This document shows, piece after piece, positions 15,938 through 64,000 of a DNA stretch of 64,000 nt. This DNA comes from Eutreptiella sp. 'Long Island Sound 2002' (Eukaryota; Protista; Euglenida), in the NCBI GenBank assembly GCA_964036045.1, contig OZ038378.1, forward strand, positions 140,492,001-140,556,000, given 5' to 3'. Within the stretch, counting starts at the first letter, position 1; every line of letters begins with the position of its first letter. The notes beneath the pieces are model-generated. The model saw nothing but the letters and a program-made list of their open reading frames with translations. It was not told the DNA's origin and ran no database searches. Position numbers and translations under genes: made by a program.

Positions 15938-16078
15938 GAGCATCTATGCTGAAGTTGTTCCAGTGTAGTGTGTCATCCCCGTTCATCTGGAAGTGCATCA
16001 TCTGCAGTGCAGAGCTTCGCTCCCATGCACACAGGCCTGCTCCCTTCAGCAGCCTTGCCTGTCCATTTTCTTGTGCAG

Positions 16079-21618: not shown

Positions 21619-21708
21619 CAGATGTACCTCCAGTTTCTTGGCGTGTCCTCCCAGCAGTCCCGCCACTCTCAGTTTGGGTAGAGTCATGTACTTGAGAATC
21701 TCCTCCCC
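21619..21708 (-). other. SAM (sterile alpha motif)-like peptide fragment
   Basis: Minus strand reads GEEILKYMTLPKLRVAGLLGGHAKKLEVHL, resembling the SAM consensus G..LL.LT..dL..lGi.lGh.kKi. Confidence 0.35.
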
Positions 21709-22771
21709 TTGTTCAGCATCAAAACTAGTGGTCGCTCAAAAAATTGTCCCACATAGATCTGTGTGTGCAGTGCTAAAAAAATGGGATTGTGTGCAGACAA
21801 CATTGGTCAGCAAACCGATGTTGGAGTTCCGGAACGGCCAATGTAAAGGTGCATATGCATAGTTTGTTCTGGGGCATTCTCATTGGAAGTCTTCATGCAG
21901 TCAATAAATCGTTGCCCGCGGAGCCACAGACCCCTCAGCACGGGTTTGAAGTACTTCCACAGCTCGTCCTGTCAAAACAGTGGTTCCAGAAGCACCTCCG
22001 TGATTGTTTAATCTAAACAGGCCCAAGAGAGACATCAAATTGTGTGTTTCAAGCAGAGCAACCGACCACAACTGAACAAGAGACAGGCAGATAGATCGCC
22101 GTATACCACATTCGCATTTTGCTTTAATTGTCGAGCCTTCCGCGGCCCAACCAACATTGCTAGCTTGTCATGGGGTGTCCTGCCAGAAGCCCGAGGCTAA
22201 AAGTGGGGGGGGGGTGCTAGTACCCAACAAGTTCAAAAGAAAAGTGCCCCCTTTTTTCCTTGTGGAAGAGGGCCGGCTAAATTTAAGCATCACACCAGGG
22301 CGGCTGGTTTTGCTGGCCTTGCTTTGGGCCCCTGTGATACCGGACCCAGAGGATCTGCCGTGGCTGCCAACTTTTATCCACGTGCATGCATCGGTAGCTA
22401 AGCTATTCCGATCTTTGCCTGAGTCTATGTCACTCTCTGGTTGTTTCACGGGATTGGGTGTTGCTTGTAATTCCTTTACACGGATTGTTATGTGTTAAAG
22501 ACACCGATTCACTGATTCAATGTGCATCGTAGATTGGCAGCAGTGGAATACTTGTATTGCCGAAGGTAAACAGCTGCAATTACCAAACGGTGAGTGTGAT
22601 GAGTAGGATAGTGAAGAAGATGATGCTAACATTGTAGTCACTACTGTGATTGTTGATACACCAGCCAAGAAACGAACCGACAGTTTGGCTCTCGCTGAAC
22701 TGTTGTTTTCCTTGGAGGGCTTGTGGGACCTTTGCTGTTTGGTGACAGGTGTTTCTAACCTATGAGTTTTA

Positions 22772-24251: not shown

Positions 24252-24404
24252 ATTGCTGCTGAGGATCCCGTGGATGGGTGGGACGAGGGCGTGTAGGGGG
24301 GGGGCTCAGACGGCGAAGAGAAGTGGTGGGCGGAGGGATACCGTTTCGCGTGGGGACGACTATAGGATGCGCGGGCGCAAGAGCCGGGGGATAGCCCGGA
24401 AGCG

Positions 24405-25764
24405 TTGGCAGCTCATTCCGTTGCTGACCGCACCTCCAGGCGTTGGGGGGGGACTTTGGGGAAGTTATGGAAGTTCACCATGGGGAGCCCGGGGAAGGGG
24501 AAGGGGGAGGTCCTTTCTGGATATTTGTTGCAGCAGTTCAGAGATGGAGCCTCGTCGTTCACGATGCGCGGGACGATCGCAGCCGTGCGGACAGCGGAGG
24601 ACATGGGGTGGATCCCTGCAACCGTGGCCCCGATTCACAGGCGACTTGCCAAGGGTGGGGGGGGGGGGGTCCTGAGTTCCAATTTTACCCCAGGTGTTGC
24701 GAGAAGCGGCTAGAAGAGGGTGGGGGGAACCGGGTGGGTGACCCTTGGTGGCTCTTATGTGCTTGTCCTGGTTTGCTTTCCTCCGGGTTGGTGAAGCCGC
24801 ATCCATACGGGTGGCGGATATTCGGGGGGAGAAAGCACTTGGATTTTGGGCTACCAAGAGGGGGTTGGTCAGAGATGGCGCAGGTGGTCGGAGTGGTCGA
24901 AGGCATGGGGGGGGGTACCTGCGCGATTACACCAAGGGTTGGGAGGGCGAAGAGAGGGTGGTTCCTAGGGGACCGCCGGTGTATGAGACTGCTTTGGCGG
25001 GGTTCCTTCAAGGGACAGAGTGGAAGGATGGGAGGTGGCATGGTCACCGCAAGGGGGGGGGGGGGGGGGCTGCGTGGGCACGTGGGCCGCCGGAAGCGTG
25101 GTTCACGTCCTTTGGGAGGTGGGAGGATAAACGCACGGCCATGGCGTATGCCAAGGATTTTCAGGATCCGAGGGTACTAGGCGACCTCCTCCTGCCGTGG
25201 CCCGGGGACGGGGACACTTTGGAGTTCCAGGACCCGGCGGCGAGCCAGGTTTGGGCGGGGGTGCAATTTGCATCAGAGAGGCTTGGAGGGGGGGGACAAC
25301 GGCGCGGGGGGGCGGACCTTGACTCGGATGACCCTGGCCCATCTGCAGGGGTTTCGCGATCCTCCAGGGCCAGGGGTCGCAAGGAGCGGAGTGCGGTTGT
25401 GGGGAGCGTCGAAGGAAGCAATGAGCGAGTATCGGGGGAGTCGACCTGCTCAGACGATGGGTCCCTCCCAGAACCCCCCCCCCCCCTTCCCCCCCAAGAC
25501 GTCCAAGGAGGCGGACAGCTGCCAGGGTTGGGAGGGCAAATGTGCGCTCAAATCCGAAGGCATCTGCCACCGGCAGGGGGGGGGGGGGGCAGGGCACCGA
25601 AACGTGACGACAAACCGCTGGCTGATCCCGCAGATTCCTTTGTGCTTGTGTTGCCGGCATGGGAAACAAATCCACAGCATCCAGTACCCCTAGTGACTGT
25701 CCCAGGCCCAAAAAGGGTATTGCCAAACCAAAGGCAGTCCCGAGCACTGTCTTGTTTGCTTTGA
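24405..25764 (+). mobile_element. Tyrosine recombinase of DIRS/VIPER/TATE type, frameshifted, with a low-complexity tail
   Basis: FLRVGE (R 24784), WATK, WHGHRKGG (H 25039, R 25048), FGRW (W 25120), AMAYAKD (Y 25147). An N-terminal core-binding-like helix YLLQQFRDGASSFTMRGTIAAVR lies in an upstream frame. Confidence 0.85.
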
Positions 25765-26485
25765 CTGCCAAGGCAAGCAAGGGTTCAAGGGCAAAGGCTT
25801 GATGCATTATGTGTTATTTGTATACTTATTTTGCTCTTTTTGGCTTCGAAACATCGGTCTGCAGACCGTTCTTTCAACGAAAAGCAGCATTTTTGCTGTG
25901 ATATGATCTGCTTTTCACATGGTCTGCTCTGTCGTACAAAGTCGTAGTGGTCCAGTCAAAAGTGTCATCCAGGGGCACATGCACCGTCGTCTTTTCTTGC
26001 CACAGTTCTCGAATGATTGGCGGAGGCTTGTGGTCCCCTCCGGCAGATATGTTGCTTTGGTTGGCCTTGCAAACAAATCAACTCGTCTCTGCATACTTCT
26101 CCCCCCCCCCCCCCCGTGCCCACAAACCCCTCCTCCCTACTGTCTGCCATCTCCTCCCACCCTTCCCTTGGCCCTGCAACGTGAGATGTGGTGGAGAGCA
26201 CCTCGTGAACCACACGCTCATGCAAACAATGCAAACAAAGAAGGGAGTGGTCGTCCTAGGGACAGTGCAATGTCGAGCAGTGGGACATATATCCCACTCT
26301 GACCTGCAAAACTGCACATTTCCTGTCCCACTCTTGATTGACACAAACGAGGTCTATGAACAACAACAGGTCATACAACAGGCACAGTACTGAACACCAG
26401 CTGCAACCCCCCCCCACCCGCACAGCGCGCGCCTGCATGCCCATTTCGCCTCCTGCCGCATTTTCCCCATGTAATGTTGCTTCAG

Positions 26486-26586
26486 GCCGCAGAGTTCCAT
26501 CCGGAATCGATGCCGTTCGATGTTGCGCAAAAGTGTTCCAAATTTACCAATGTCATCTTGAACGACGCCAGTCAGCATGGCACCAG
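26486..26586 (+). CDS. Putative host exon C
   Basis: Acceptor atgttgcttcag, donor CAG|gtgtct. Phase-0 start, peptide AAEFHPESMPFDVAQKCSKFTNVILNDASQHGT, ends in phase 2. Confidence 0.5.
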
Positions 26587-28299
26587 GTGTCTCTTGTCAC
26601 CCCCAATCTGCAATTCTTGGCCAATTAGCAGGTCTCCATGGCTGCCAATGTGGTGGCGAGCATTAACAAGTGGCGGCGCTTTGGCATTAGCGTTTAAATG
26701 GCCCGGTTTTCCCCTTAGCGGATTACGAGAAAAGTGTTAAAGTGTTTGTGATTTGGCAGGAAATGGTCGGAACACCAGGGCAAAACCAGGCAAAACAGGC
26801 AAAAACTGGGGAAAACCAGGGGAGAATAAAAGAACAAATGGGTACCAGGTGGCAAGAAACTCAGGGGTGAATTGGAAAATTGAGGGTTTCATGTAAAGGG
26901 ACAGGCATTGCGTTGAGGTCTAAGTTAGCTCCAGGAAAAGTGCCCTCCTCCAGCATATTTCCTTTTTTCTGTTGCTCCATTCTAGAATGTGGAAACGAAC
27001 ACTCTCCCCTGTGCTGCACACAACATAGTTTATTTTGTCCCCCCCAGTTCAATCACCATAGAAGAGTGGGTACATCCTCTCCCACAGAGACAATATCTGA
27101 ATCAGTGTTGACATCACCTGCATTTGTTGGTCGAGTGGTTTGTCAAGCTTGAGGAGATTCCCGTACTGACAACGAGAGGCAACAGGGAAGGTGGCCTTCA
27201 GGAAGCAGAAAACCTCACATGGGGTGTCGTATCGCAATGTGCCAATTGTTCGCTCAGACCAGAAGTATGAGACAAACACGGTGTTTGCACAAAGGTCATC
27301 AGGGGAGTTGCAGCAGCAGTATACCTACCTGCGATGAATTTTGTTGTCTCACATGGAGAGTACAGTGCATTAATGGAGTCCTTGGTTTAAAAAGTCCTGG
27401 ATTTACAAAACCTAAGTGGTGTATGAGAGTGCAGGAAGAGTCCAAAGTTGGTGTCCTACTGCAGTACCAGTATTGGTAGCTCCTCGTCGGTCTGAAAAAT
27501 AGCAATGAAAAGTCTGAAAATTTCAACAGTAGCAACAACACTACCAATCAGTCAATGTGACATACATTGCAGCGATGCATAGAAAAATTTCCAATTGTGT
27601 AAACATCAATGCATTCCAACAACTATTAATTGAATTGCATAAATCACAGGCACTACTGCGACAAAATCACGGATGTCCAACACAGAAATTAGTATATGTC
27701 AGCGTAGCTCATTATGTCATCCTACACAGCGCACGCTGTGAGGCCTGCGGCTCATCTATGGGCAACAGACTGGCATCCTGTGAAAATGCATCACGAAGCT
27801 TCCTCTCTTTTTTCAATCTTTTGAACTGCATCAATGCCATCGCTTCCACAGATTGTGTTTTGTTTTCAGCGCAACAAAACTTTGCAATGCAGGCACACAT
27901 TTGAGCATTCCAGCACAAAGGCAAACAGGAGTTGTGTGTCACAAACAAAGTGTGAATCACATATTTCACAACCCGACCCATGTGCCTGTGGCCGGTGACC
28001 CCCGTGTGGAGTGCCATCTGCTTTTCATACTTGACTCATGCCTTGGCACTTGTCCAAGCCCACTGCCAAGCAAGCTAGGAAGCCGGCGGCGCTTTCCCCC
28101 CTCACCCCCGAGCAGCGCTGTTAAGGGTGGTGCTGCATCCTCTAGTGGTTGTACGGCCACGCTACCTACCCTGTGCCCGCCCAGTGCACGTAGTGGGCGG
28201 CCTCTTTCTGCGCCCTAACGCCCATGGATGACCTGTGCCCCGGCGCCATTCGCCGCCAAAATATTTTCTTGAGAGCAAGGAACAGACGGTGCCGGACCG

Positions 28300-29640
28300 C
28301 TGGCCATTCCCAAGAGGGCACGATTATGGCTGCACGCCGTCTTGACCCCTTCCGGGTACGACCTTGGCTCCAACAGCGCTAGAGTGCATGAGGCCTTGGT
28401 GTGGTGCTACCCTGGCGCCTGTTTTGCACGCAGCCCCCAGCCCACCAGAATCCTTATGGCGGGGGCTAATGGAGATCATCCAAGGGGAAGCCGATGCCGC
28501 CCCCATCCAACTGGGGGCGTGGCCCCCTTCCTCAAGAGGCATCCCAGGCCACCAACCGGTCTGCTTCGACCTGCATGTGCAGGGGGCGAGGCAGTGGCTA
28601 CCGAAGCTCATTTGGCCCCCCTCCCGCATGAGACACGCAAGAAGGCCTCGCTAGTCTCCCCAATGGTGGCCCCCTTGCAGCAACGGTGGCTTGCTACGGT
28701 GACGGCGGGTGACGTGCACCGCCTCTGGGCCCTTTGGACTTTGGTGGCCGAGGAGATCCTTTTGGCCCTCTGGTGCCGTGTTTCAAGTCCGATCTTCGGG
28801 CCATTGAATCGCGACACCGTTGCCGGCGACACCTCCACATTGGCATGAGGGACCAGGGACAAACAGAGCCCTGAAGGTGGTCCGCCTGTGCCCCCGGCAG
28901 CTTCGGCCTAGGGCTACCGGACCACTTGCCCCCCTAGGTCACCAGCGAGCTCATGTGGCAGAAGAGCTGTGTGGCCCCCCGCATGGACCTCATCGGTAGG
29001 GTCTCGAGCCACACCATGCAATGTTAGGGGGATCACCATGGTGCTAACCGCACACAGTTGGCGCCGCAAGGCCGGCGGACGGCGCAAGGCTCTACGCCCC
29101 GCCTCTAGCCGCTTATTGAGGACCTGCCGGTGTGCCGCGAGCCATGGCTACATCCATGCTAAGTTGGCGGAAGCAATCTACCACCGGCAGGGCCAACCCA
29201 CGGAATAGGATCGCCGCGGCCCCGGCATCGCACATCCTGCCTCGCAACTGGGAACATGTCCTCCGTGGCCGGTGCCGTGCCTTGCCGCGCCACCACGCCC
29301 TAGGCCACGGCCTGGGTGTCGTCGTCGTAGCTTGACGACCCCAAGATATATACCCTACACCCTGGTGTGCTAACAGCCGCAGAGCCGCGGCGTCCGGCTC
29401 GTCCCCGGGGCCGATGTCCTCCACGTTGAGGGGAAGCGCCATGGCCACATAGACCTTGAGGCAGAGGGCGTCGAGCTACCGCTTGTAGGGTGTCGCGGAA
29501 GTTCACCGGGATCACCGATACCCCCCCAAACACGAATAGCCCTTGGAGATCCCACCCTCGTCCAACTTGGCAGCACCCATGCTCGACGCCACGGGGGGGA
29601 CGTCTCCTCGGTTCTGGTACGCGACTCCCCCCCCTCCCCC
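28300..29640 (-). mobile_element. Degenerate non-LTR reverse transcriptase fragment
   Basis: Ordered motifs on the minus strand: AKLD..ISKGY (A-like), DIGPGDEP (B-like), YDDDT at 29315-29329 (C-like), LFRGLAL (E-like). Several frameshifts. Confidence 0.5.
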
Positions 29641-30559
29641 CCCCCCTCCTGCCCTCCGGGCCCACTTACCCCCCCCCCCCTTGCGCAAGCACTGCCTTGT
29701 CTAAGCACATGAGCCCGTGCTACCGTTGTTTTGATGGAATTTTCTGACCATGGTTTTTATGGTCAGAAATATAACATTATGCGATTGTGCTTCGCTTGTA
29801 GAGGGAAAGGGGGGCTTGATCATGCTTGTGGTAGTTCCTCCTGCTCATACCCACATTCTGCTTGCAATTGCAACCCAATGATGTCCCCGTTGATGTGATT
29901 TTCAGCCATGGCTCATGTTGCTACACCTGGCATGGCTGTTACGTACATCCGGTCATGGGGAGGATGATGAAGTGCAGATTGTGTGGGCCAAAGCGGGCCG
30001 TGGGATTTGGGGCCTTGGCCATGTGTTTGAGGGCAAGCTTTACTTCACCAAAGATATTGTTGATGACAGTTTTGTCCCAAGGAATAGGAAGCCTAAACCC
30101 ATTCCAAAACCTGAAGCCAAGCCTGCCCCAAAGGCTGCCCCAAAGGGCAAGCATGTGCAATTGTTCAAGATGAGGCGCAAGGTGGGAAAGGGCTTCTATT
30201 CCACAGCTCCTGATGGCCCTGATGGGCAGTGAGGACCCCCAGAACTCGCTGAAATTTGCCTGCACATTGTGTTGTAGTGCCCTGTTGCGACAATTGTGCT
30301 TAGGGTGAGGTATGGGCAGGTTTCCGGTGACATACGTTCTTTTGGTACCGCGCGTCGCGCGCAAGCACGGCCTTGTCTAAGCACATGAGCCCGTGTTACC
30401 GTCGTTTTGCTGACTTTCAGCGTGCTTGCGCAAGGGGAGGGGGGGTAGTTGCCAAGGGTCAACAGCTACTGGCCATACATATGGTGGCACCAAAGGCGCC
30501 CGAAAATTTTTTTTTATTCCCCTTGCCCATTTTGTCCACTTTGCACCTCAACACTATCC

Positions 30560-30655
30560 TTGAAACCAACCTTGACTCTAATGCCCACCCCAACCCTCAG
30601 CCTACTCCTAACCCTACCCACAAACCTTACCCTTGACCCTAACCCTAATCAAGAC
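30560..30655. repeat. Degenerate interstitial telomere-like (CCCTAA)n tract
   Basis: ...cctaaccctacc...ccttacccttgaccctaaccctaat. Confidence 0.65.
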
Positions 30656-31673
30656 TGAATATTGGGACCGAGCTGGTGGGGGAGGGAACATCAGCTATGA
30701 CTGGTGAGGGACATCAAGAATGATTTACACATTGATGGCTCTTGACAAAGTGGAATCGGCTTGCAAGTGAACCCCATCACCATGAGGCCCACTTTCAAGG
30801 CTTTTTGGACTTCTGAGGGGCCAAAATACCCCAAAATGGGCTCAAAATGGGCTCATTTCACCCGTTTGTGCACCCCAAATGATCTAGGATGAGGTTTGGA
30901 AAAATGCGTTTTTGACCCATTTTTTACCCAATTTTGGTCCCAAAACAGCCCATTTCCAAGGCATTTTGGGATTTTCGGAGGACCAAAATGGGCCACCACA
31001 AGCTCAAAACGGTCCAAAAACACTTGTTTTAGCGTCGCACATGGTCGAGGATCATTTTTGAGAAAAGTCATCTTTTTGCCCGTACTGGACCCTGTTGACC
31101 CATTTGGGCACCCACCTGTTTGGGCTTGAGCTCGCAGCTTGCCGCAACCTAGTGGGCCTAGGTATGGGGGTCTAGACGTCCATTTGGGCAATTTTGAGGG
31201 GTGGAAACCACAAAAAGTGGGGGGTTGCAGGTGGAGTAGGTGCCCTCGGAATCGCATTTTGAGCCATGTAGCCAAAGATATGGCCTATTCTTGGTTTGTG
31301 GCTGTCGGCATTTGGAGCTTCTGGGGCCCTTTTTGGGCCGTTTCCACGACATATCATGGAGTTAGAGGGCTGCAAAGAGCTCGTTGACATGGGGAAGTCA
31401 AGCGGCACGTGGAGTGTACCCACCGTTTCCCTTTGTTTGGCCGTTTTGAATGTGTTCCAGGGCTTTTTAAGCCCAAAAATGGCTGTTTTTGGCCCTAAAC
31501 TGCAGTTTTTGAAACTGAGGTCCGCCACTTGCGAATCCCGTTCCCGGCCGCCACCATTCAGTTTCTTGCTCAAACTTTGTGTGATTGTACTTCACACCCA
31601 TAGGTATCATCCACCAAAATTTCACCCGAATCCGAAGCACCACGACGGAGTTCTGATTTTGGCCCATTTCGCG

Positions 31674-31735
31674 CGTGCTGCTTGCTGCTTGCTGCTTGCT
31701 GCTTGCTGCTTGCTTGCTGCTTGCTGCTTGCTTGC
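31674..31735. repeat. (GCTT/GCTGCTT)n microsatellite
   Basis: Directly visible. Confidence 0.9.
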
Positions 31736-31799
31736 TAAACCTGGTAGGTCCACCCTAGACACTAAAAAGGGTTATAAAACCAAGACTGGTTCCACCAGC

Positions 31800-31892
31800 T
31801 CGGTGACCCTAGCCCTAACTCTAGCTCTAACCCTAGCCCTGCCCCTAGCCCTAGCTCTCACCCGAGGCTCGGGTTAGAGTGAGTGTTGGGGT
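31800..31892. repeat. Degenerate (CCCTAA/CCCTAG)n tract followed by a short inverted GGGTTAG-like segment
   Basis: gaccctagccctaactctagctctaaccctagccctgcccctagccctag...gggttagagtgagtgttgggg. Confidence 0.65.
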
Positions 31893-32199
31893 CCAAAATG
31901 GAGAGCAATGATGCCCCCCCCCCCCGCCCCCCAACCCACCACCCCAAACCGCCCCACCTAGACCCCCCTCAGCCGACCCTCCCAACCCCCCCCCCCCTCG
32001 CCCCTCCCTGCACCCCACCCCCTCCAATCCCCCCCCCCCCGAAACAACACCCTGCCTTGCCGCCGGCTTAGTGCATGGTTCCCACACTTGTATGATCTTT
32101 TTCGGCGCATCTCTCATGCTATGTGGACCGAGCGGGCAGCGCCAAAGAGACCCCCCTCCCCACCAATGACCCCCCCCCCCCCCGAAGGGGGTGTTCACC

Positions 32200-32860
32200 A
32201 CGTGGAGGCACCAATGTGTGCAAACCTTGGCGCTAGCATCACTATGCCCTAGCCATGGCCCCCCCCAAAAGCCCTTAAATTGCGGTTGTTTAGATTGTTC
32301 TGTGGCAACGGACATTTTCTCAAAATGTCATTGTTTTGGAAACCCTTCTAACAACCGTAGTATGGGTTGGCGTGATGGTTTGGTGATAGCACGGGTTTGT
32401 GAGCACCCATGGGTACCACACATTGCCTTAGGCCCATGGCTATGGCGCCCTGAAAAGTCCCAAAATTTTATTGTTTCATTGTTTAGTGGCACTGAAAGGT
32501 ATTCAAAAATTTCAGTTTTTTCAAAACCATTCCGTCGTCCTTGGGATGGTTTTGGCTGGCATTTGGTGACAATACCGGTATTTGAGCACCCATGGGGATC
32601 CACATAGTGGCTAATGGGCCTATGTAGACGAGGCCATGGCCCCCCCAAAAGCCCCAAACTTGCTCGTTTTGCGGGTGTGCATTGTCACTCGAAATTTTCT
32701 GAACGTTTAACTTTTTTCAAAACCCTTTATTGCCCCTAGGATGGGGTTGGGTGATCATTGGGTGATAATAAGGGTACTCGAACACCCATGGGGACCAATG
32801 TACTGGCGGGTAGGCTCATGTAGCCCGATCCGTTGGCCCTCCAAAAGCCCCAAAGTTGAT
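32200..32860. repeat. Degenerate tandem repeat of about 190-200 bp, about 3.3 copies
   Basis: catggcccccccaaaagccc-like anchors at about 32253, 32440, 32634 and 32833. gagcacccatggg recurs. Confidence 0.8.
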
Positions 32861-33939
32861 GGTGTATGGTGTTCAGTTGACAATCACCCCGAAGAGGGTT
32901 GTTACCTTAAGCGCTGCCGTAGGTGCATGTATCCCTCAATTCTAGGATCATTGGTGTAGCATACCCCGAGAGATGGTGCTGGATGCGTAACCCCTAATAA
33001 ATCATCATTTTGGGTGACGCCAGGATCCCCCGAAGAGTTTTTCAACTCTGAACCCCCCCCTCCTTCCCGGGCACCTCGGTTGTGGGGTGTGTGGAGGGAG
33101 TTGGGGGGTTCTTTGCATGTTCCGGCCATTGTGCGTACATTTGGAACTCGGTCCTCTAGAACCTTTTTTTTGTTTTTAGACCCCATGGTGGGGGTCCCGG
33201 GTCTAGACTCCGGGTAACCGTCGCCCCCCCCCCCCCCCCCATGGGACCTTGATCAGGCCTTTGCCGTTTTTAGGTTTGTTGGGCTAGCATGTGTCGGTTG
33301 CTAATAGTTGAAAATTCACCTTTCTGTGAAATCCTTCTGTCACCCGTCCGATGGCTTTGGGTGATTGTTTGGTGACAATGTGTGTAATCAAGCACCCGCA
33401 AGTAGCCATGTAGTTGCCAGTATGCTCCATGTAGCCTTAGCTAGGGGCACTGCAAAAGCCCCGGAATCGTTGTTGTTTACATTTTTTCATGCTATCTGGG
33501 AAATCACCTTTGCAGAGGTTGTTAGATCAAAGCTAGGTAGGCCTGCAAAAAGGGGAAACCGCGACCTACCCTATCATTTTGGGCCTTTTTGGGCTTAGTC
33601 GCGTACCCCACCCCAAGGGGTTGAATTGTTGGTTTCACCCCTTCTAAGATCATCATTTTGTCCAATAAACGCATCCCCCAACGAGACTTTGGTCTGGACC
33701 CCACCCCCCATTGAAACCCACTTTTTTAAGGCATCATGAGGGGTGGGGGGGGTCGAAAATGTCGAAAAGATGACTTCCCCCCCTGTTTTGTGTCCGAAAT
33801 CATGAATCTTCTAGTTTTTTTCGGCTTTGAGTTGAAAAAGTGTTTCCGGATCCCAACTCCATGGGGTTTGTATCGGGCAGAGTGAGACAAGCGCTCATGC
33901 GGTTCCGGCCATTTTTGCTATGTTGGTGGTTTTGGTGGC

Positions 33940-34370
33940 CTCGGGGACCCGTGGTACCGACTCTGAAGGGTGCAAGCAGGGATGTTGTGGCAGTATATGC
34001 CTACTAGGATACGAAAAGACTTTTTTTTTGCAATCTCTAGCCTTGCCGAGGGCTGCTCAAGACCCGTGCGAAAGACGCGAAATTACTGTTTTCTACCAAT
34101 CATGGCTTACATGAGGAATGGGCCGGTGCACAACTTGCTGATGTAGTTTTCCACCGTGGGCAGCTCAAAAGTCAAAGTTTCCGATGCTTTTTTTTTGTGA
34201 TTTCGTGACCACACAAAATGACCATCCAACCTATGTAAAGCATGTTTTTGGGCATTTTTTGTCCGCTATTCACCTTATTTGGGTATTGATTGCGGGGGGG
34301 GGGGTCTCCCAAGGAATTGGTACACAACCGGTTTATATATTTTTTCACCCTGGGCACCTCAAAAATGGAA
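33940..34370 (+). repeat. Partial copy of the 10.1-11.15 kb foldback family (spacer plus right-arm unit)
   Basis: Shares gtggtacc.actctga.ggg...cctactaggatac, gaatgggccggt.cacaac and aatgaccatccaa..tatgtaaagcatgtttt. Confidence 0.8.
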
Positions 34371-34899
34371 GTTGTGGCCCATTGAGCTCAAGTTAAAGAC
34401 CCCCCCACCTTCGCCATGGCCCCTCGAGTTGGGGTTAGGGACTCCCACACTTCAATGTGGCCCTTGAGGTGCGGTGATGGACTCCCATGTTTCGTTGTGT
34501 TTTGGCTCGCAAGAAAAAGGCTACATTTCGCATTTGCCAAATTCACTGCAAATGTGCATCACACCTTAACCTCAACCCCCCCCCCCCCTTCCCCCCACCT
34601 TTACCTTTGCGATTAATGTTGCAAGCTCCAAAGTGCAGACAAAGTGCAGCTTTTGCGCTCCGAATTTGTATGTTAAACCACCCCCACTAATCGTTGACCG
34701 GAGGCACCTACCACAAGGAGGGAATTGTCACATGGAGTGAACATTTTTGGTCAATGTGCAATGCAATTGTTGTTATGGGTGATGGTAATGTCATTTTTGG
34801 TCAATGTGCAATCCAATTGTTGTGATGGGTGACGGTAATGTCATTTGTGATTTTGGGTAGTGATGATCCGAGTTGGACACATGCATTTTCTGCACTTCC

Positions 34900-35611
34900 T
34901 TTTTTGACGTAAACAAGGTAAGTCTTGAGAGGGGTCAACCACGCCCCGATATATTTTGCTTGTGTGTGCCGCATAATTGTAGTGGTGGGGTGTGCAATGC
35001 AACACCAAAATTGTCAAGTGTACCATTTGCGAAGCGGTGTAACGTGTGTGGCGTAGGGAAACACAAACAACATTGGCGAGTGTTCGTGCATAACCCGTGT
35101 ACCGTTCCACAAACTACAATGGACAAGTTTATGCTTCCAGATCGTCCCCATCAGCAAGCCTCAGATTATAGGCTTGTTTCGGGCGGAATGTTTTCGCATT
35201 GGATCTGCGCATGCAACTACTTGGTGCATTTGAAGCGAATGTTTTGACATAGCTCCGTTGTGCAAATAGTACATTGGTTTGAGGAATGAACGGTGTGGTG
35301 TGTATGTGCTGAATTTCATCGCATTAACACCACAATTGTTTTGTGAAATTGTTTGTGCCTTGCTTGTATACTTTCATGTGCATATGTTCCGTCCTAAAAT
35401 TGTTTACACGTTTATGAGAGCAACCAGCCATGATTGGCAATATGTTAGAGTACGGGATGAAGCCCATTTTGGCTCCAAATTTGGGCCAGATAGACAGAAT
35501 GGTGCTTTTGATTGGAAGGCACTACCATGTATGAACACAACAACCACCCCATCAACGTGTTGATGGCATTTAAACTCATTAAAATAATACTTTACCAACA
35601 ACAACAACGAC

Positions 35612-35672
<61 letters not shown>

Positions 35673-37620
35673 GCAACAATTATACTAAACACACAAATAG
35701 TTTCTTGGAAGTGGAGTCCACAAAAGATCCAGCACAAGCACGCATGTATAGCATTCCATAGCTTCCCAGATGATCTGTATGACAAACAAACGATGTGTGC
35801 ATGTGTATGCCAAGTTCTTCCAAACAATCAGTTGCTGAACACATACAAAACAACCACCACCGTGCTGTGCGGATTATCAAGCAGCCGATGTAGATGTTGT
35901 TACGCATGATGTGTTGCCCTCTATGTACGACACTATATGTGCCGACCCGAATGATTGTTCTCAGAGGGTTGTGTTACTAGTGTGGAACACAAATACTTTT
36001 GTGGCCATGGAGAAGAATGTCAACACCTTTGTTGCATCCCCCATGCCCCGTGTGTTGTGCCAAGGTAGTTCCTTTGTCGATGACGAGGTCAATGAGGCAC
36101 ATGTTGAGAGGGGCCAACCACGGCCCGTTATATTTTTTGCGTGTGGTGCACAAGTGTCATGGTGGAATGCGCAATGCGGCACCAACTTTATCGTGTGTAC
36201 CATATGCAAAGCGCTAGGAGGTGTCAACTTGTACGCGTACGGTGAATAAATGTGCAAAGTGGTAACATATGTGCACATGTACGTTTGTGATGCACGGCAA
36301 AGCAAAATGGGGCCATTTTCTTGTGTGCCACAGCGATGTTAACCGCATGATTGGGTCGTTGTGCAATGCAATTGATTTTCTGGGTATAACAATGTCCTTT
36401 GTGCTCTTTGGCAGCAATGATCCAACTTAGACACAATGCATTTCATGCAGTTCCTCGACAATGTAAATATCATATGAGGTAAATGTTGAAGGGGGGCAAC
36501 CACGACCCAAAGTAGTTTGCTTGGTCTGTGTTGCATTATTGTAGCGGTCGTAACTTTTTTGCAGCACCCGCAGGTCTGGTGCGTTGCCCAATGATAGTGC
36601 AACCTCCTTTTTCGACGAGAATGTCAATCGGGTAAGCGTAGAGAGGGGCAAACCACGGCAGAGGGGCAAACCACATTTTTCTTGCATGTGGTGCAGAATT
36701 GTAGCGGTGGAATGCACAATGGGGCACCAAAATGGTCCTATGTACCACGGGCATGAGGTTGTATCTACAATGTGGTGCAATGGTACAATGTGGTCTCTTT
36801 GCAGCCCTCCTTTTGTTTACACCATGCACATGAGGGGTTTATATTTGCTCTAATTTGGCAATTATCGAGTCACTGTGTGTTTGCCATCAGTATTTAGTGT
36901 CCATGAATGCTTGCATAAATTGTGTGTCATGGCAAGATTATCGTGGGTTGTATTAGAGATGCTCATAAAATGTTGGATTAATACCATCGCCCGTTGGCTT
37001 GTGCATTTCCGTTGCCTTGTGCTTAGGTACAAAATTTGTTGTTCGTTTACGGGTTACCCAATGCATCGAAAAAGAAGTGCATAAAATGCATGATGTGTCA
37101 CTCAAACCAATGCGCTTACATGCACCTTTGTAACAGCAACTAGTTGTTTCTTTTTCCTCCCTTCATTTCCGCCGTGGCTGCTATACACCAACAAACTATT
37201 GCTCCTGCGGGTTATATGATGGCATAGCATTCCATCTGTGGTGCCTTTTGTTTCTTCAAACATTCATTGCAAATTTGGTTGTAACTCATTGTGTTTTTTC
37301 AATTTTCACCGCAGATTTCGTTTGCATTGTGCGTTGTCTTCCTTTGACAACAATTACAAATTGCGTTCGGCACAAAGTCATCAAGGGGGGTTGCATATTG
37401 ACCAAACGCAATGGTGCAAAGGCTGGCACATATGGTGACTCAAACCCAAGTGTCGCCCTATTGTTATTATTCTCATATAAGGTAAGCATTGAGAGGGGTC
37501 AACCGCGGCCCAATGTATTTGGCCCACATGTGTTGCATAACAGTTGTGGGATGTGCAATGCGACACCAAAATTGTTGTGTGTACCATTTGCGAAGCGGTG
37601 GCACGTGTGATGTGTAGCAA
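34900..37620. repeat. Dispersed AT/GT-rich repeat family with the anchor gagaggggYcaaccac
   Basis: Anchor at about 34928, 36107, 36490, 36641 and 37492, with similar downstream sequence. Confidence 0.7.
35596..35679. repeat. (CAA)n microsatellite
   Basis: Directly visible. Confidence 0.95.
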
Positions 37621-47159: not shown

Positions 47160-49540
47160 CTGCGTATGTTGGTGAGCAGTTCGGTGAACGTGTGGGGTTC
47201 ATGGCTGGTGCTCTCACCTTCTCTGCAGGTGATGTTGACTACCATAGCAGCTCCAACCTAGTGCAAGCCTAGTTTAGCCTTGCCATTGTAGCCTACTAAG
47301 TTACCTTGATGGGTGCCATTGAGGCCTACCATGTGCACAGTGGTCCTCTGGGTGAGGATGTAGATCTGCCCCACCCTGGTGAAGCCCTCGACCCTTGGGG
47401 TTTGGATAGGGAAACTAACACCTTTGCTGAGCCGAAGACGAAGGAGATTAGGAAGGGCCGTTTGGCTATACCCTCTATTTTCAGCTACTACGTGCACGCC
47501 GTTGTGAGTGGTAACAGTTCATTTGCGATGTGGGCCTCCCACATTGCCGACCCATTTGCCGTGAGTGGCATGATTAGCACCCACGTGATTCAGCTCGCTC
47601 CGTCCTTTGTGGCAATTTTAGCCGCCACAAGCTCCCCGTACTACGGCCCCGGACCGTCCGAGGTGGTTCGACGACTACTCCAATGGTTCTATCACTAGCT
47701 ACCTCACTGGTGAGTGCTCTAGTGACTACGATTGGAACACTGCCGGTTTGGCCGCTGATGCCTTGACGTTCGAGAAGTAGTGCGAGGTTTAGATCGCCCA
47801 CACTCATTGCGCGATGTTGGGTATTTTGGGCCGCTTTACCCTTGAGTTGTCGACCAAGTACCCTCGTGAGCTTGTGTGGTTCAAGGCTAGTGCTCAAACC
47901 TTCTATGAGGGTTGTCTGGACTACCTTGGCAGCTCCAACCTTGTGCACGCTTAGTCCAGCCCGGCCATCTTGGCTTGCCAAGTTGTCATGACGGGCGGCG
48001 TTGAGACCTACCGTGTGCACAGGTGTCCCCTGGGTGAGGATGTAGTTGTGCCCCGCCCTGGTGAAGCCCACAACCCTTGGGGTTTGCGTAGCAAACTTGA
48101 TACCCTGGCGAAGCCGAAGGCGAAGGAGATTAGGAACGGCCGTTTGGCTATGCCTTCCACATTCACCCACTACATGTAGGTCATTCGGAGTGGTGAGGGT
48201 CCAATTGCGAACTGGGCCTCCCACACCGCCGACCCACTCGCCGTGAACGGCATGACCAGTGCCTCCGTGAGCGGCATGACCAACGCCCACGTGACCCAGC
48301 TCGCTCCTTTCCTTGTGGCAATGTTAGCCACCACAAGCCTCCCATACTCCGGCCCCGACTGTCCGAAGTGGTTTGACGACTACTCCCATGGTCTGTGATT
48401 GGCTGCCTTTTTGGTGAGTGCCCTGGTGACTACGGTTGGGACACCGCCGGTTGGGCCGCTAACCCCTAAACCTTCGCGAAGTGCTACGAGGGTGAGATCG
48501 CCCACAGTCATTGGGCAATTATTGGGTACTTTGGGTTGGTTGACCCGTGAGTTGTTGACAATGTACGCTGGTGAGCAGCTTGGTGAGCATGTGTGGTTCA
48601 AGGCTAGTGCTTAGGTCTTCTCTGAGGGTGGTGTGAACCACCTTGGCAGCTCCAACCTTGTGCATGCCCAGTCCTTCCTTGCCATTCTGGCCCGCCAAGT
48701 TGTCTTGATGGGCGCCGTTGAGGCCTACCGTGTGCACAGTGGCGCCCTACGTGAGGATATAGATTTGCCCCACCCTAGTGAAGCCCTCGATCCTTGGGGT
48801 TTGGCGGGCGAACTTTGGCTGAGCCGAAGGCAAAGGAGATTAGGCACGGGCGTTTGGTTATGCCTTTCAAGTTTGGCTACTAGGAGCCCGCCATTGTGAG
48901 TGGTGAGGATCCAATTGCAAAGGGGGCCTCCCACAATGCCCACCCACGTGCCGTAAACGGCATGAATACCACCTATATGACCCACCTCGCTCCTTCCCCT
49001 GTGGCAATGGCAGCCACTGCACGCTCCTCAAACCACGGCCCTCACCGTCTGAGGTGGTTCGACGACTACTCCCATGCCTGTGTTCCGGGCTACCTCACTG
49101 GTGAGTGCCTTCGTGAATACGGTTGGGACACTGCTGGTTTGGCTGTTGACTCCAAGACCGTCGACAGATACTGCGAGACGGAGGTCTCCCACGTTCGTTG
49201 GGCAATGTTGGGTACTTTGGGCTGCTTTACCCATGAGTTGTTGACCAATTACCCTGGTGTGCCTATCGTTGAGCCTATCTGGGTCAAGCCTGGTGCCCAA
49301 ATCCTCTATGACGGCGGTCTGGACGGCTTAGGATCCTCTAGGTTGACCCACGCTCCGTCCATCTTTACCATCCCAAGTCTCCACGTTGAGCGGATGACTG
49401 GCGCTGAGGCATATTGTATCATGGGTGGCTCTTTGTGTGGGGCCGCGGGCTTGTACCATGGTGGTGCCTTCGACCCTCTTGGTTTGGCTGATGACCCCAC
49501 ATGGTTGCTCGGCTGACGATGGAGGTGATCAACCGTGGAC
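47160..49540 (+). pseudogene. Lhcb: Intronless, degenerate LHCII (chlorophyll a/b-binding) polyprotein with four tandem units
   Basis: Repeated LHC motifs ([50 protein letters not shown], KEIxNGRLAM). Linkers APSFVAILAATS (47597), APFLVAMLATTS (48303), APSPVAMAATA (48989); period 686-706 nt. Many stops and frameshifts. Confidence 0.92.
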
Positions 49541-59099: not shown

Positions 59100-62000
59100 T
59101 CATCGGTTCATACTTGTTGCGATGTTGGTCGGTGCCAGGTGTGTGGGGCCGGCACGGTACGTTTGTACTGTGCGCCGCCCGCCCGCCGCGGGGGAGAAAA
59201 GCCATGACAAGTGGTCGGACCGCTGTAAAAACATTTTTCCCCTGTCGGTGCCCTGTTCCCTGCCCCGCCCTGGCAGTGTTGCATGCACAATCCATTATCC
59301 GGTATTTCGTGGTGCTCCGTAGCCGTACTTCCAGTTTCGCTTGTGCCACTCATATGTACACCCCCCGTCTGTGGCAAGGCCCCGCCGGTCCCCCTCGGTG
59401 TGTCCCTGTGCTCCCCATGGGAGCCCCAGGGTGTTGTCCCAGCTCGGTGGTGCTGTGCTCGTGCTCGTGCCTGTCTGTCTGCCGTGCGCCTTCTCGTGTC
59501 GTGCGTTGCGGGTCATTCGGGTGGCGTCTCTGTGTCACGGTGCTGGGTGTGGTGGCTAGGATGGTTAGGGTAGTTCGGCTTGTGCTGTGGTGTCGGGACG
59601 CTCCGTCCGACGTGGCGGGTTGGGCTCGGCGTAACACACCCGTGCCTGTTGGCAAGGGGGTCGGCGCGGCCCCGTGTGGTGAGCTTGTGGCCCCCCGCAT
59701 GCCCCGGGTAGGGTTGTGGAGGACAGGAGTACCGGGCAGTGTTGCAGCCCCCTTCCCTCTCATGGACGCTGTTAACTGTCTGCGGGGAGTGTGCCCCCCG
59801 TACCATTTGCATAAGTTATACGTGTCGTAACCTTACGCGTCCCAGGCGCTCAACTCCCCGGAGGAGGTGCGCGCTGGTCCCCGCGGTGCACTTATCTTCG
59901 GATGCTCGCCCTGGACGGTAATACTCTGGCCGGTGGTTCGCTAACATTCTTGTGGTTATCGGCCCGGCCGCGGGTTCCGCGTATTTGGCTGGGCCCTTTG
60001 CCCGGCCCCTTGTGGATCCAGCTCGCGGGAGAGGAGGATGAGGCGGGAGGACCGGTCCGGGCGTGGCGCCGCCTCGTTCCCTGCTGCAGGTGGATCGCGG
60101 GGTCCGAAAAGCGTGGCCCTCGCCCGGGGGGTTGTAGGAGGAAGTCGTGGGTTTTCCGTGCGTGCTTGACACCACGGGTTGCGAAGGCCGGCCTCCACTC
60201 TCCGGGCATCTGTTGCATGTGTCGGGCAGGTTGACGTCCGTCTCGTCGGTTTGTCGGACCGTCAGGTGTTGCTGGGGTGTGTTGCGTGGCTGTGTGCCAC
60301 TGGGTCGTCGCGGTAGTACCTGTGGCCAGGCGCGGCTCAGGGTCCTGAGGGGGCGTCCCATGCGTCGCACCAGCGCCCCTTGGAGGTTACTGAAGTTTGC
60401 GTGCACAAGGGCTGGGCGTGCCGCCCGGGTCTCCGCCTCAGTGCGGACGGCGGGTTGCCGTCAATTGCCCAGCGCCAGCGCCCGGATCCGGTGGCGTGCG
60501 CTGTTTGACAACACCCCCGTGATCATCCGTTCGGCTGCGGGCTCCGCGTGTTTGGCTGGCCCCGTTGCCCGGCCCCTCGCGGACCCGTTACGTGGGAGAG
60601 GAGGGTCAGGTGGGATGGCGGCCCTGGGTGTGGCGCTGCCCCCTTTCCTTGTTGCAGGCGGGTCGCTGGGGTCCGGGAAGTGCGGCCCCCGTCCGGGGGA
60701 TGTGGGAAGAGGTCGCTGGGGTCATATTTGTGTCCGACACCGTGGGCTGCTAAGGCTAGCCTCCACTCCTTGGGTGTCCGTCGTGCGTGCCGGGCAGGTG
60801 GACGCCATCCCCGCTGGTGTGTCCGGTCGACGGGTGGTGCCGTAGCATGTTGCACGGCCGCGCGTTGCTGGGTTGTACGAGGGGTCTTGTTGGGCGAGGT
60901 CTGCCCGGCCGGGGTCTTTGTGGTTCGTGGCCGACCCCGCTGCCGCTGGCGTGACGGTCATCGTCCGGTCATCTGGCGGGAGGAGGCGGTCCCAGCTTCG
61001 CCGCGCCGTCTCTTCCCTGCGCGTGGCCGGTGTGGGACTCGTGCCGTGCGCGTGCGGCCGTGCGTCGTCGCTGCAGGTCCTGTGGTCGGCCGCGGGTCAG
61101 GGCCCTGGGGGGTTACCCTCACGTCGTACAAGGGCGCTGCGGAGGGCACTGAAGATTTCGTGCACCAGGGCCGCGTGCGCCGCCCGGGCCTCCGTCTCAG
61201 TGCGGATGGCAGGCTGCAGCTGCCCGCCCAGCGCCAGTGCCCGGATCTGGTGGATCGCGAAGACGGGGCACAGGTTGGGCTCAGTGGGGGTTTCCGCCGT
61301 CGGTTCCGGGATGGCCTCCATCTGCTGCCAGCCGTCGAGGTAGAATCTCCACGCCGCTGACCACGCCCTGGTCCGCGGCCAGCGGCGCCGCGCCCACCGC
61401 CAGAGGCAGTAGAGGGCGTGGGCTGAATGCCAGGTGCCTGCCGTCCCCGACACAATGGCAGTCAGGGGGTCCGGGGGTTGGTCTGGGGGCAGGGGGGTAG
61501 CGTTGTCCGGCAGGTCCGTGGTCGCCCGGAGCATGGAGTCGACGGCCTCCGGGCTCCAATGGTTGTCCTGCGGGTGTGGGATGATCCGCACCTGGTAATA
61601 GTGGCCATTCTCCAACACGATCATGGCGATGGTACCGGGGTCACGTTCGCGCGGCGGGGGCGCTGCGCGCGCCGTCTCCGGGTAGTGTGCCGTCAGGTTC
61701 GTGAGGTTGTGCCCCCTGCTAGGGCGGTCCCGCTTTCCCATGCCTCCAGGCCCTCGTGCGGTGGGATACGGAGGTTGTCGGGTCTCGGTGGTGGGGCGGC
61801 CCGCTCCCGGCCTCCGGTGGTGGGTGCGCGCCTGGGGTCCGTCGGCGGCGCTATGAGCGTGTGTACCCAGCCCAGGTGTGGGACCCACACGGCCCATTGG
61901 GCCGGTTGGTGGGTGTTGAACCACCAGATCCACGCTTCAATGAGGTCGTCAGAGACCTGTGTCCCGGGGGTGACGAGCGCCTGGAGCTGTTGCACAAAGA

Positions 62001-64000
62001 TTTGGGTCGTCGGGGCATGTGGCAGGGGGACTACGGCAAAAAGCCTGTTCGGGTCGACGTTACGGAGGTGTTCCCGGAGGTTGGCCACCAGCTCGCTCGA
62101 GGGCGTGGAGGCGTGGATGTCGTAGAGCGCCCTCAGTTCCGCCTCGTCGAAGGGACCCGTGCCCCGTTGCTGTGGCGGTCGGGGGGGCGGGGGGGGCATG
62201 GCCACCCGGTCTTGGTCCAGTGCCGCGTCAGCCGGGGAGGGGTGCCGTGAGGTGGCGCCCGGGTGTCCCCCAGGCACGTACTCCGTGGGGGGTTCCCGTT
62301 GCCGGGGCATCGAGCAGGGTGTGGCGGTGGGCAGTGGGCCAGCGGGCTCCTTGGGGCTGGAGGTCCCTGTCATCTCTGTGTCCGCCCTTGGTCCGCTCGC
62401 GTCGTGTCCCGGCTGCCGCGATGTGCCCTCTGTGGCCTGGCAGCTTCTGGACTGCGGGGAGGGCTGCCCCCCCGCCCCTTGCGTAGGGCTGGGGTCGGGC
62501 GCGGGCTCCCTTGGTCGCGTGTCTGTGGCGTGTGGTCCTCTCGGTAGCGGATCGGCCGCTGACCCCGGGAGGGAGGCGGCGGATGAGCTGGACGTTTCGC
62601 CCGCCGTCTGGCGAGGGTCCGCTTGAAGCGCTGCTTGCCGCTCGCGCTCGGCCGGCGTGAGAATGGTGGGGATGTGCGTCCGCTCGGTGCGGGGCCTCTT
62701 GGACCGGCGTCTAGGGTCGGAGGTCGATGATGTTCGCCGAGCGTGGGGGTCGCGGGGGTCCCCGTGGTCCCTGTCCATATCCTCATTGAAGACGACTCGT
62801 TGCGCTGCGGGGGGCGGCGTGCGGCTGCGGCGACGGGATCGGCCAGGGTGCCTCGTCTCTTGGTGCTGCTCCGGCGTGTCGCCTTGCACCCTCGAGGCGT
62901 GGGGACTGCCCGGGCTCCTCCGTGGGGCGAACGGCCGCAGGGGGCTGCTGTATGTGCCAGAGGGGGAAGCCCTACCGGGTGGTGGACCCCGTGGGTGTTC
63001 CAGTGAGTTTCGGTGCGCCGCCTGCCTGGGGGGTTCCGGGACGTCTTGGGACCGCGGCCGCCGGTGGCCTCAAGTGGTCCCTGGTAGCCCGGTGATCCAG
63101 GGATGTCCCAGATATTATGGTCCTGCATGGCTGTACGGATGCGCAGGGCGGCGCGCTGGTGCCACCGCCAGTGCAGTCCGTTCATTTCATCTGGGCTGTA
63201 GGCTCCCATATGCGCCATGAGCCGGGTGGCCACATAGCGCCATTGGCCGGGGTGGTCCATGGTGGCGGGGGGTGTGTGCGCCGTCCGATGACCAAACGTG
63301 ACGTCTGCCATGGTGCGTGTTCCCTCCGCGAGGTGGCGGGACCGCGAAGAAGGTACCCATCGCATGCGGACCGCCAGTTCGAGCTGCTCCCCTGTGACAA
63401 GCCTGGGGATCCAGAAGCCTAGGTCTTGGGTCGCTTCCTGCTCCGCTTGTTCCCTGGGGTGGCTGGCGTCACCCTCCAAGCGTGCATAGTCCAGGGGTCC
63501 CCGCCCCCAGGGCGGGGCGGCCCCCGGCGGTGGGGCAACAGGCTCACTCGCGGTGTTGGTGGCCGCTTCCACGCGCGTGCCCTCACCTGGGGCGTTGCGC
63601 TCATCCGTAGTCCGGTCCGCCGCGCCGCTCGCGGTCGCCTACTTCTCGCCCGTAGTGGCAATCTGCCCCAGGACGGTGTAGTCGCGCTGGAGGTGCGCTT
63701 GTCGTGGCACCGTGAGGGGCGTATCGTCCGCCTGGTCGCGTTGTGGCTCCGGGTGGACGCGTGGCGTCTCCGGTGCTGGGACCGCCTGGGGGTCATCCCT
63801 GCAGGAGTCCATGAAGGCATCGAAGGAGTCGTCGTCGCGGTTGTGCCCGCTGGGTGACGTTCCTCCTTCGTCCGCGCGCTGGGGCGTGTCGGGCGTGGTT
63901 TCCCGAGCCTCTGACCCCACGCTGATTTCCGGTGGATCTCGTTGCAGCGCCTCCCCTGGCGTGCTCATGCCTGCGCGGGTCGCCAGGTTCTCCCGGGGGG
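59100..64000 (-). mobile_element. Young GC/CpG-rich element encoding a long low-complexity ORF with a Ulp1/C48-like protease; open at the right edge
   Basis: Sharp GC increase near 59100. Overlapping long minus-strand ORFs of 400, 398 and 278 aa are joined by few frameshifts. Confidence 0.7.
61230..62010 (-). CDS. Ulp1/SENP-like (peptidase C48) domain, split by one frameshift
   Basis: LVTPGTQVSDDLIEAWIWWF (resembles the L.DevIn.y motif), ENGHYYQV (H 61601-61603), EAVDSM (D 61538-61540), NLCPVF (C 61268-61270): the H-D-C order of clan CE. Confidence 0.7.

Follow-up and report, generated by a model that had tools for sequence, protein, structure and literature searches.

The window analysed here is a 64,000-nt stretch of the genome of the euglenid Eutreptiella sp. 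'Long Island Sound 2002' (C1:140492001-140556000), and the feature under study is a minus-strand repeat at its far end which carries part of a large open reading frame (ORF), named ORF3 below, whose C-terminal domain had been read in an original prediction, made from the letters of the window, as a Ulp1-like protease. Following searches of the 2.28 Gb of its own genome, the repeat at 59113-64000, which continues to window-equivalent position 64228, is most probably (at roughly 0.85) a dead, 5'- and 3'-truncated fragment of a 16.8-kb long interspersed nuclear element (LINE) of the apurinic endonuclease (APE) type that has recently spread to very high copy number. The window copy is inert and has no likely function, as ORF1, the APE, the reverse transcriptase (RT), the first part of ORF3 and the 3' tail are all missing from it, and what is left of the frame contains six breaks.

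An internal fragment of a larger repeat

The own-genome DNA search gave a sharp repeat edge at 59113. When the locus was extended past the window end, as the original prediction had proposed, similarity to other copies stopped at 64228, and the fragment is therefore 5.1 kb long and corresponds to element positions 10090-15206 in ORF orientation. The match of the window locus to full copy B was likewise limited to A 2113-7228. Nine other fetched copies have both flanks of the 5.1 kb conserved among themselves and unlike the flanks in the window; because the flanks common to the other copies differ from those of the window, the window copy is an internal fragment. Its 3' break lies 1,576 bp before the element tail, and a search of the window and of the following 16 kb found none of the remaining element parts. 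The stretch had been taken for the element itself, and is instead only an internal 5.1-kb piece of a 16.8-kb unit. Its description as more than 4.9 kb of CpG-rich sequence was accurate; from 60001 onward the observed/expected CpG ratio is 0.90 and the G+C content 0.69-0.70, compared to CpG ratios of 0.46-0.73 across 4001-60000 and 0.85 in the first 4-kb bin.

The 5' break of the fragment adjoins a 2.6-kb multi-copy element (L011:7216-9849, window-equivalent 64216-66849), which is bounded by 209-nt direct repeats that are 97% identical. Other genomic copies of this adjoining element have ~300 bp extra in the middle.

The full element is an APE-type LINE

Two full-length copies, B and C (loci L013/L018), were read. 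The full unit (B 9925-26706 and C 19924-36714) is 16,782 bp long and 96.1% identical end to end between the two, and no long terminal repeat (LTR) or terminal inverted repeat (TIR) was detected in its self-comparison. Pfam searches identified an APE domain (Exo_endo_phos, 5.7e-07, 29.9 bits with a cut-off of 24.5) in L013:4501-6084:-, directly upstream of the RT frame, and RVT_1 (3e-19) on the same strand in L013:2839-4497:-. The only PDB match of the RT piece in a sequence search was the R2 retrotransposon protein, and the APE piece and the post-RT piece had no PDB sequence match. Neither a restriction-like endonuclease (RLE) nor an RNase H was detected in Pfam scans of the element frames or in the PDB search of the post-RT piece; Pfam scans of the window ORFs, the intact 1012-aa ORF, ORF1, the frames after the RT, the UTR and the antisense strand yielded nothing besides the APE, the RT and a sub-threshold RING finger. 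Both full copies end at the 3' side in a (CCTA)n run, and in one of them a 15-bp target site duplication (TSD), CCTACGTGAAGTGGG, flanks the whole 16.8 kb. The 5' limits of the copies vary, with query ends between 3157 and 4565.

The element is an APE-type non-LTR retrotransposon of 16.8 kb, since an APE and an RT occur in it together with a (CCTA)n tail, a TSD and varied 5' ends, and LTRs and TIRs were not detected. It would move by target-primed reverse transcription, as the tail, the TSD and the varied 5' truncation are the marks of that process. The window had been said to hold no transposase or RT, which was confirmed. As to the genes and termini that might accompany the repeat, an RT and an APE are present in the full copies and a TSD in one, and a DDE gene and TIRs are not.

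Ulp1 domains are carried by some MULE, CACTA and Zisupton elements, as well as by NeSL non-LTR elements, and an LTR retrotransposon with a dUTPase, RT, integrase and chromodomain lies ~5-14 kb past the window end on the same strand; both facts would suit a DNA transposon (MULE, CACTA or Zisupton-like) or an LTR element with a Ulp1 domain. This origin has next to no chance of being correct, as the full copies contain an APE and an RT with no TIR, LTR or DDE gene, and other copies of the present repeat have nothing in common with the neighbouring LTR element. MULE/CACTA and LTR elements were consequently rejected as candidates on the basis of the APE, the RT and the lack of terminal repeats in the full copies.

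The neighbouring LTR-type retrotransposon itself (L012:3659-9998; C1:140562659-140568998, about 6.7-13 kb past the window end, minus strand) consists of three consecutive ORFs with matches to a dUTPase (2.9e-33), RVT_1 (6.4e-23), an integrase zinc-binding domain and rve core, and a weak chromodomain.

Copy number and age

In the own-genome DNA search 32 copies were scored, with 94-100% identity, among 2,076 first-look candidates, and all 32 begin at query base 13-17, which is window position ~59113. The domain protein had 16,043 first-look candidates in the genome-wide protein search. Divergence is about 4-5% among copies and 3.8% between the two full ones, and such low values indicate a recent burst. 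The prediction of a young mobile element is borne out by these counts and by copies that are 94-96% identical; the locus is a high-copy repeat and not a single-copy host gene.

Gene layout of the element

The layout was deduced from stops common to both full copies, and positions are given in ORF orientation (Table 1). ORF1 has no Pfam match. After the shared TGA at 2732 the same frame runs on through the APE and the RT (together ORF2) to 6877, and the TGA could be passed by read-through or be followed by re-initiation. Another frame is open from 6625 to 8067, and is followed by ORF3 and the 3' untranslated region (UTR).

Table 1. Features of the fragment in the window (window positions) and of the full element (element positions, ORF orientation).
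Feature	Position	Strand	Length	Basis or remark
Internal non-LTR retrotransposon fragment	59113..64000	minus		own-genome copies, comparison with full copies
3'UTR, first part	59113..61096	minus	first ~2 kb of 3.56 kb	last 1,576 bp with (CCTA)n tail absent from window copy
Ancestral TGA stop of ORF3, after ...GNPPGP	61097..61099	minus		common to both full copies
End of ORF3, pseudogenised	61100..64000	minus	last ~1,040 codons	alignment to L003:3488-6523:-
ORF3 C-terminal domain, candidate clan CE/C48-like	61100..62157	minus	353 codons	motifs, family alignment
Pro/Arg/Thr/Ser-rich low-complexity linker	62160..63100	minus		translation of intact copy
Full element, ORF1	ATG at 41, to 2731		897 codons	shared TGA at end
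Full element, ORF3	about 8114-13219		~1,700 codons	two full copies; shared TGA at 13220
Full element, 3'UTR			3.56 kb	full copies

Several observations count against so orderly an architecture. The TSD was not found around the second full copy. The codon at 4319, between the APE and the RT, is a stop in both full copies, TAG in one and TGA in the other, as if a TGG or TAA had mutated twice. In addition, both full copies change frame at about 6.6-6.9 kb and at 8.07-8.28 kb, and these changes may mark true borders between genes or be defects that both copies have from a common ancestor. As the shared stop and the frame changes were seen in only two copies, the layout of ORFs upstream of ORF3 is provisional.

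The start of ORF3 (L018:1-711:-), which lies outside the window, begins MPEGE and carries CGVC...HWFCSPC...CPLC, with the ligand pattern C-x2-C-x17-C-x6-H-x2-C-x2-C-x6-C-x2-C. The Pfam family zf-RING_2 spans 3-44 of its 44 positions here at a sub-threshold E of 0.18 (12.5 bits, with a cut-off of 27.3), and the N-terminal finger of ORF3 is thus RING-like, but not proven to be a RING.

ORF3 and the 3'UTR in the window

Breaks in the window copy were located against L003:3488-6523:-, an intact copy with 1012 open codons. The window frame has lost a single nucleotide at each of three places (near 63787, 63077 and 61722), has gained three at 63402-63404, and is interrupted by stops at 63967, 63641 and 63072; the frameshift near 61722 splits the C-terminal domain. 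What is left on the minus strand is a series of overlapping ORFs of 278, 398, 400, 133 and 109 amino acids (aa). A nearly continuous minus-strand frame of more than 900 aa had been described, and a single ancestral frame does underlie the region, but three frameshifts and three stops now interrupt it in the window. The ancestral TGA listed in Table 1 is the point at which every aligned family protein terminates.

The length of the window ORFs was compared with 500 dinucleotide-preserving shuffles of the 5.1 kb, in which the median longest ORF was 305 aa and the 95th percentile 473 aa. The longest in the window is 458 aa from stop to stop, and its length alone is therefore not above chance, so that the coding case rests on other evidence. 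Plus-strand antisense ORFs of 270-347 aa were considered as a gene and rejected, as they are within chance length and have no Pfam match. The Pro/Arg/Thr-rich linker was correctly recognised upstream of the protease-like core, and had no family match in Pfam.

Downstream of the ORF3 stop, positions 60349-60494 are a degenerate in-frame duplicate of the last ~50-68 ORF3 codons, and form a direct repeat (D2) with 61108-61253 at 75% identity. The HMM of the domain matches this UTR translation at E 1.5e-16, with the Cys lost. The UTR contains a further duplication (59936-60082 and 60503-60649), and there are internal duplications of 375-573 bp; the 3' region has thus become longer through partial tandem duplication. 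No Pfam match was found in the 3'UTR frames, including the region 59100-59560, where faint endonuclease-like traces had been reported and which is UTR.

ORF3 is judged to be a gene of the element

We judge ORF3 to be a real gene of the element which, from comparison of its copies, appears to be under purifying selection in active lineages. The ratio dN/dS among ten copies was calculated in the annotated frame and in both frames shifted from it. For codons 1-149, the linker and the C48-like domain, which are three of the four segments of ORF3, it was 0.58-0.64 in frame and about 1.0-1.1 when shifted; the values for the linker were 0.64 and 1.0, and those for the C-terminal domain 0.59 and 1.06-1.11. 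A lower ratio in frame than in shifted frames implies that part of the divergence arose in active lineages under purifying selection. Codons 150-359 showed no clear constraint (0.81 compared to 0.70-0.85 shifted), and the globular N-terminal segment that had been proposed found no support, as this ratio is accompanied by the lack of any family match.

The open frames of other copies point the same way. The 1012-aa frame of the intact copy is longer than the longest ORF in all 500 shuffles, several copies keep 735-898 aa open in the ORF3 frame, and in L002, L004, L005, L006 and L008 frames of 824-979 aa are open upstream past the 5' end of the 5.1-kb piece. Elsewhere in the genome, the protein search found open frames of up to 1,840 aa which include the C-terminal domain. 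Family members in the databases, down to 61% identity (subfamilies at 61-65%), align colinearly over about 350 residues, and one divergent database member is an uninterrupted frame in the genome.

ORF3 could also have been a host gene, or part of another element, which was gained by 3' transduction or nested insertion and then co-amplified. Shared stops and frame changes separate it from the APE-RT frame, the 3' region has been enlarged by internal duplications, and ordinary LINEs are only 4-7 kb long, all of which would fit such a history. We consider it improbable, given that the TSD encloses the whole 16.8 kb, that no internal element ends, LTRs or TIRs were seen, that the same junctions occur in all copies examined, that there is no single-copy host paralogue among the scored protein matches, and that purifying selection was found among element copies. 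Even an ancient capture would leave ORF3 a gene of the element today.

The C-terminal domain as a C48-like candidate

We lean towards reading the C-terminal domain of ORF3 as a very divergent clan CE (Ulp1/C48-like) fold. The predicted His, Asp and Cys motifs were all located, as GHYYQ (His 61601-61603), AVDSM (Asp 61538-61540) and TPTEPNLCPVF (Cys 61268-61270). An alternative His lies fourteen residues on in HW (61559-61561) and an alternative Asp in LPD (61505-61507). The motifs follow the C48 order, with a helix motif SDDLVEAWIWWFN, the His strand GHYYQVRI, the Asp-Ser motif AVDSM and a Cys that opens a helix, NLCPVFAIHQIRALA, and in a greedy profile alignment all four are colinear with the C48 domains of the genome itself. 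Most family members, the most divergent ones among them, have GHYYQ/HW, VDSM/LPD and NLCPVF. In the ESM Atlas, 25 of the 30 clusters nearest to the L003 domain carry PF02902 (score 0.95; 183-184 shared features), as do 22 of 30 for a member that is 65% identical (score 0.94; 173-175 shared features), and it is unlikely to be pure chance that the motif reading and the language model reach the same family. The natural member nearest the family centre (P0003) was picked by means of a majority-rule string of the domain. The secondary structure of both AlphaFold models, beta-beta(H)-beta(D)-alpha-beta-beta-(C)alpha-alpha, also fits the C48 order.

A considerable body of evidence weighs against this reading, beginning with the structural and language-model results themselves. 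PF02902 is present in only 16-23% of the members of the neighbouring Atlas clusters, and the Atlas recognition of 2253 is below the 2300 mark of the tool, so that the high Atlas score is weak evidence. The two AlphaFold models had mean pLDDT values of 36 and 58 and pTM values of 0.21 and 0.34, and searches of Foldseek PDB, VIA wide and BFVD with them gave no clan CE match. The structure prediction which had been suggested as a check on the fold was thus negative, but as the models are of low confidence these fold searches carry little weight.

Sequence comparisons were also negative. There was no Pfam match at E up to 10 in 26 family members, at E up to 1 in the window ORFs, or at E up to 0.1 in the long ORFs of intact copies, and a six-frame PF02902 scan of the genome recovered 46 other loci, none of which belongs to the present family. 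Searches of the PDB by phmmer and hmmsearch, with the domain and the family profile, found nothing, and the family HMM does not match the canonical C48 loci of the genome. Against a C48 profile built from the Pfam-positive C48 loci of the genome and three database relatives, hhalign gave a probability of 0.3-0.5% and an E of 0.11-0.22; its score of 16.1 was reached by 14 of 150 column-shuffled templates and surpassed by the reversed template (18.3). An HMM search of 1.84 billion representatives returned 182 hits, all apparently fragments of the same family, and this and a word-index search gave same-family matches only, all of them drawn from ENA and none linking the domain to another family.

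Nor do the residues themselves settle the matter in favour of a protease. The oxyanion Gln expected six residues before the Cys, which the original prediction had noted as not apparent, is absent from all 134 sequences, where the position is A in 91, T in 22 and E in 8; the family majority reads TPTA(P/T)NLC and the window TPTEPNLC. Catalytic activity is doubtful because of this missing Gln. The candidate catalytic columns rank 74-260 of 356 in conservation and so are not above average, which is to be expected where most sequences are decaying copies.

Alternatively, the domain may be lineage-specific with no protease fold, and its likeness to C48 in motifs and language-model features superficial, arising from short motifs and the composition of element-borne proteins. 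The profile-profile score that is no better than its shuffled or reversed controls, the confinement of the 182 hits to what appears to be one family, the lack of structural matches and the low share of PF02902 in the neighbouring clusters all speak for this explanation, which we regard as a serious competitor that falls somewhat short of even odds. Three things speak against it, namely that the motif reading and the Atlas features independently agree on one family out of thousands, that the four motifs are colinear in the greedy alignment, and that the predicted order of secondary structure fits C48.

The clan CE fold remains our preferred reading of the domain, which we name a C48-like candidate; it is not filed as a member of C48, because the sequence-based tests of membership failed. 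The Ulp1 domain of the original prediction is therefore plausible but unproven, being supported only by motif order and language-model neighbours, and lacks support from Pfam, the PDB and profile-profile comparison.

A stronger claim would be that the domain is an active Ulp1/SENP-type cysteine protease, which strips SUMO, or a different ubiquitin-like modifier, from proteins of the host or the element, or else cuts the large protein that the element itself encodes. In its favour, the order of His, Asp and Cys is that of clan CE and the motifs around them are C48-like, most language-model neighbours of two members with 65% identity are C48 clusters, dN/dS shows constraint on the domain, and a RING-like finger in the same ORF makes for a coherent ubiquitin/SUMO theme. 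There are also precedents in the Ulp1-like domains of NeSL and Utopia LINEs (PMC4640811) and the Josephin-like protease of Dualen (PMC9977147, PMC8557442). We hold this claim only tentatively, as the oxyanion Gln is replaced by A, T or E, there is no HMM, profile or structural support, and with two alternative His and two alternative Asp residues the triad is not uniquely defined. Furthermore, the Asp-to-Cys spacing of about 87 residues is longer than the spacing of about 49 in Ulp1.

The genome contains other multi-copy ORFs with a Pfam-significant Peptidase_C48, at C1:197534960-197538505 and at least 8 further loci (L033/L034, L036), and at C7:64742685-64744562 (L037). One family of these is 1,182 aa long with C48 at residues ~139-237 and is followed, about 4 kb downstream, by ORFs with DEAD and Helicase_C; a second family is 626 aa long. 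They resemble additional mobile elements with a Ulp1 domain, of another type than the present LINE. At C13:6.85-7.65 Mb, at least seven dispersed-tandem loci have frames of 338-360 aa which match the N-terminal half of Peptidase_C48 only (2-122/130; E about 1e-4).

Proposed role of ORF3

ORF3 would be expected to serve the element and not the host. If both the RING-like and the Ulp1-like readings hold, it would couple an E3-type module to a protease of ubiquitin-like proteins, and its targets would be SUMO/ubiquitin conjugates of the host or proteins of the element itself. The function suggested in the original prediction, a deSUMOylase or self-processing protease that might counter host silencing, is hypothetical in the same way. 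Taken to its full extent, the proposal is of a euglenid APE-type LINE with its own ubiquitin/SUMO toolkit, a RING E3-like finger and a divergent Ulp1-like protease without the oxyanion Gln, which rewrites SUMO/ubiquitin marks on host chromatin or restriction factors, or processes its own giant proteins; we put this forward as a speculation that is unlikely to hold in full. If true, such a toolkit could help to explain how a 17-kb element came to number thousands of copies in a 2.3-Gb genome that is heavily methylated. With its abundance, its recent spread and its many near-intact copies, the family would then be tractable for the study of how a retrotransposon interferes with SUMO- or ubiquitin-dependent silencing. 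We know of no established role for the Ulp1-like or Josephin-like proteases carried by LINEs.

A light-harvesting complex ORF in the window

Elsewhere in the window, a light-harvesting complex (LHC)-like ORF at 48896-49516 (plus strand) has as its best PDB match the 620-aa multi-domain chain 9vfj_2, at 1.7e-72 compared to 1.7e-45 for the next hit. Euglenids have polyprotein LHC precursors, and the match fits a euglenid genome and is consistent with the LHC polyprotein pseudogene that had been proposed at 47160-49540.

Comparison with known systems

LINEs normally carry only what their own copying needs, and ordinary ones are 4-7 kb long. The present element resembles ordinary APE-type LINEs (L1, CR1, RTE and the trypanosomatid Ingi) in having an APE followed by an RT on one strand, 5' truncation, a TSD, a simple-repeat tail and a very high copy number. 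It differs from them in its length of 16.8 kb, in an ORF1 of ~900 codons without a recognisable domain, in a third ORF of ~1,700 codons and in a 3.6-kb 3'UTR with internal duplications.

The C-terminal domain shares with cellular Ulp1/SENP proteases (PF02902, clan CE), including those of its own genome, the His-Asp-Cys order, a Cys that opens a helix (xCxVFAxxxxxxLA), an upstream 'LND/SDD...W' helix motif and a C-terminal helix. In contrast to these, it has no significant sequence or profile similarity to the canonical C48 domains of the genome, no oxyanion Gln and two residues fewer between the Asn and the Cys, and Pro-rich insertions add about 75 residues ahead of the beta-sheet and about 30 more beyond the Asp.

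In NeSL and Utopia-1_TSP, which are nematode LINEs with a restriction-like endonuclease, a Ulp1-like domain is located at the N-terminus of the single protein (PMC4640811). The likeness lies in a LINE with an RT, an endonuclease and a domain read as a Ulp1-like (C48) cysteine protease. NeSL/Utopia elements are target-specific and have a C-terminal RLE and an N-terminal protease in one protein, whereas the present element is dispersed, 16.8 kb long, and has the APE N-terminal to the RT and the candidate domain at the C-terminus of a separate downstream ORF of ~1,700 codons. The features which mark the NeSL/Utopia clade, a C-terminal RLE, an N-terminal Ulp1-like domain and a single ORF, are thus not those of this element.

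In the Dualen LINEs of green algae an APE, RNase H and RLE are accompanied by a Josephin-related cysteine protease, and it has been proposed that the protease module interferes with protein degradation (PMC9977147, PMC8557442). Dualen/RandI and the present element are both large protist or algal LINEs with an APE, an RT and a C-terminal cysteine protease module of ubiquitin-pathway type, which is a candidate in the present case. The Dualen module is Josephin-like, of clan CA and with the order Cys-His, and is accompanied by RNase H and RLE; here the order is His-Asp-Cys, and RLE and RNase H were not detected.

No description of the present LINE family was found in the searchable literature, Repbase being outside that search, and a 2026 preprint on the retroelements of Euglena is silent on proteases. 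The Euglena gracilis assembly is reported in bulk classes only, with 1.49% LINEs and 32.7% unclassified repeats (PMC11252322), and giant LINEs of the present type may be hidden within the latter. If the RING-plus-Ulp1-like reading is true, the element would be the third independent case of its kind after NeSL/Utopia and Dualen, and the largest, as well as the first in which an APE-type element encodes the protease in a downstream gene of its own.

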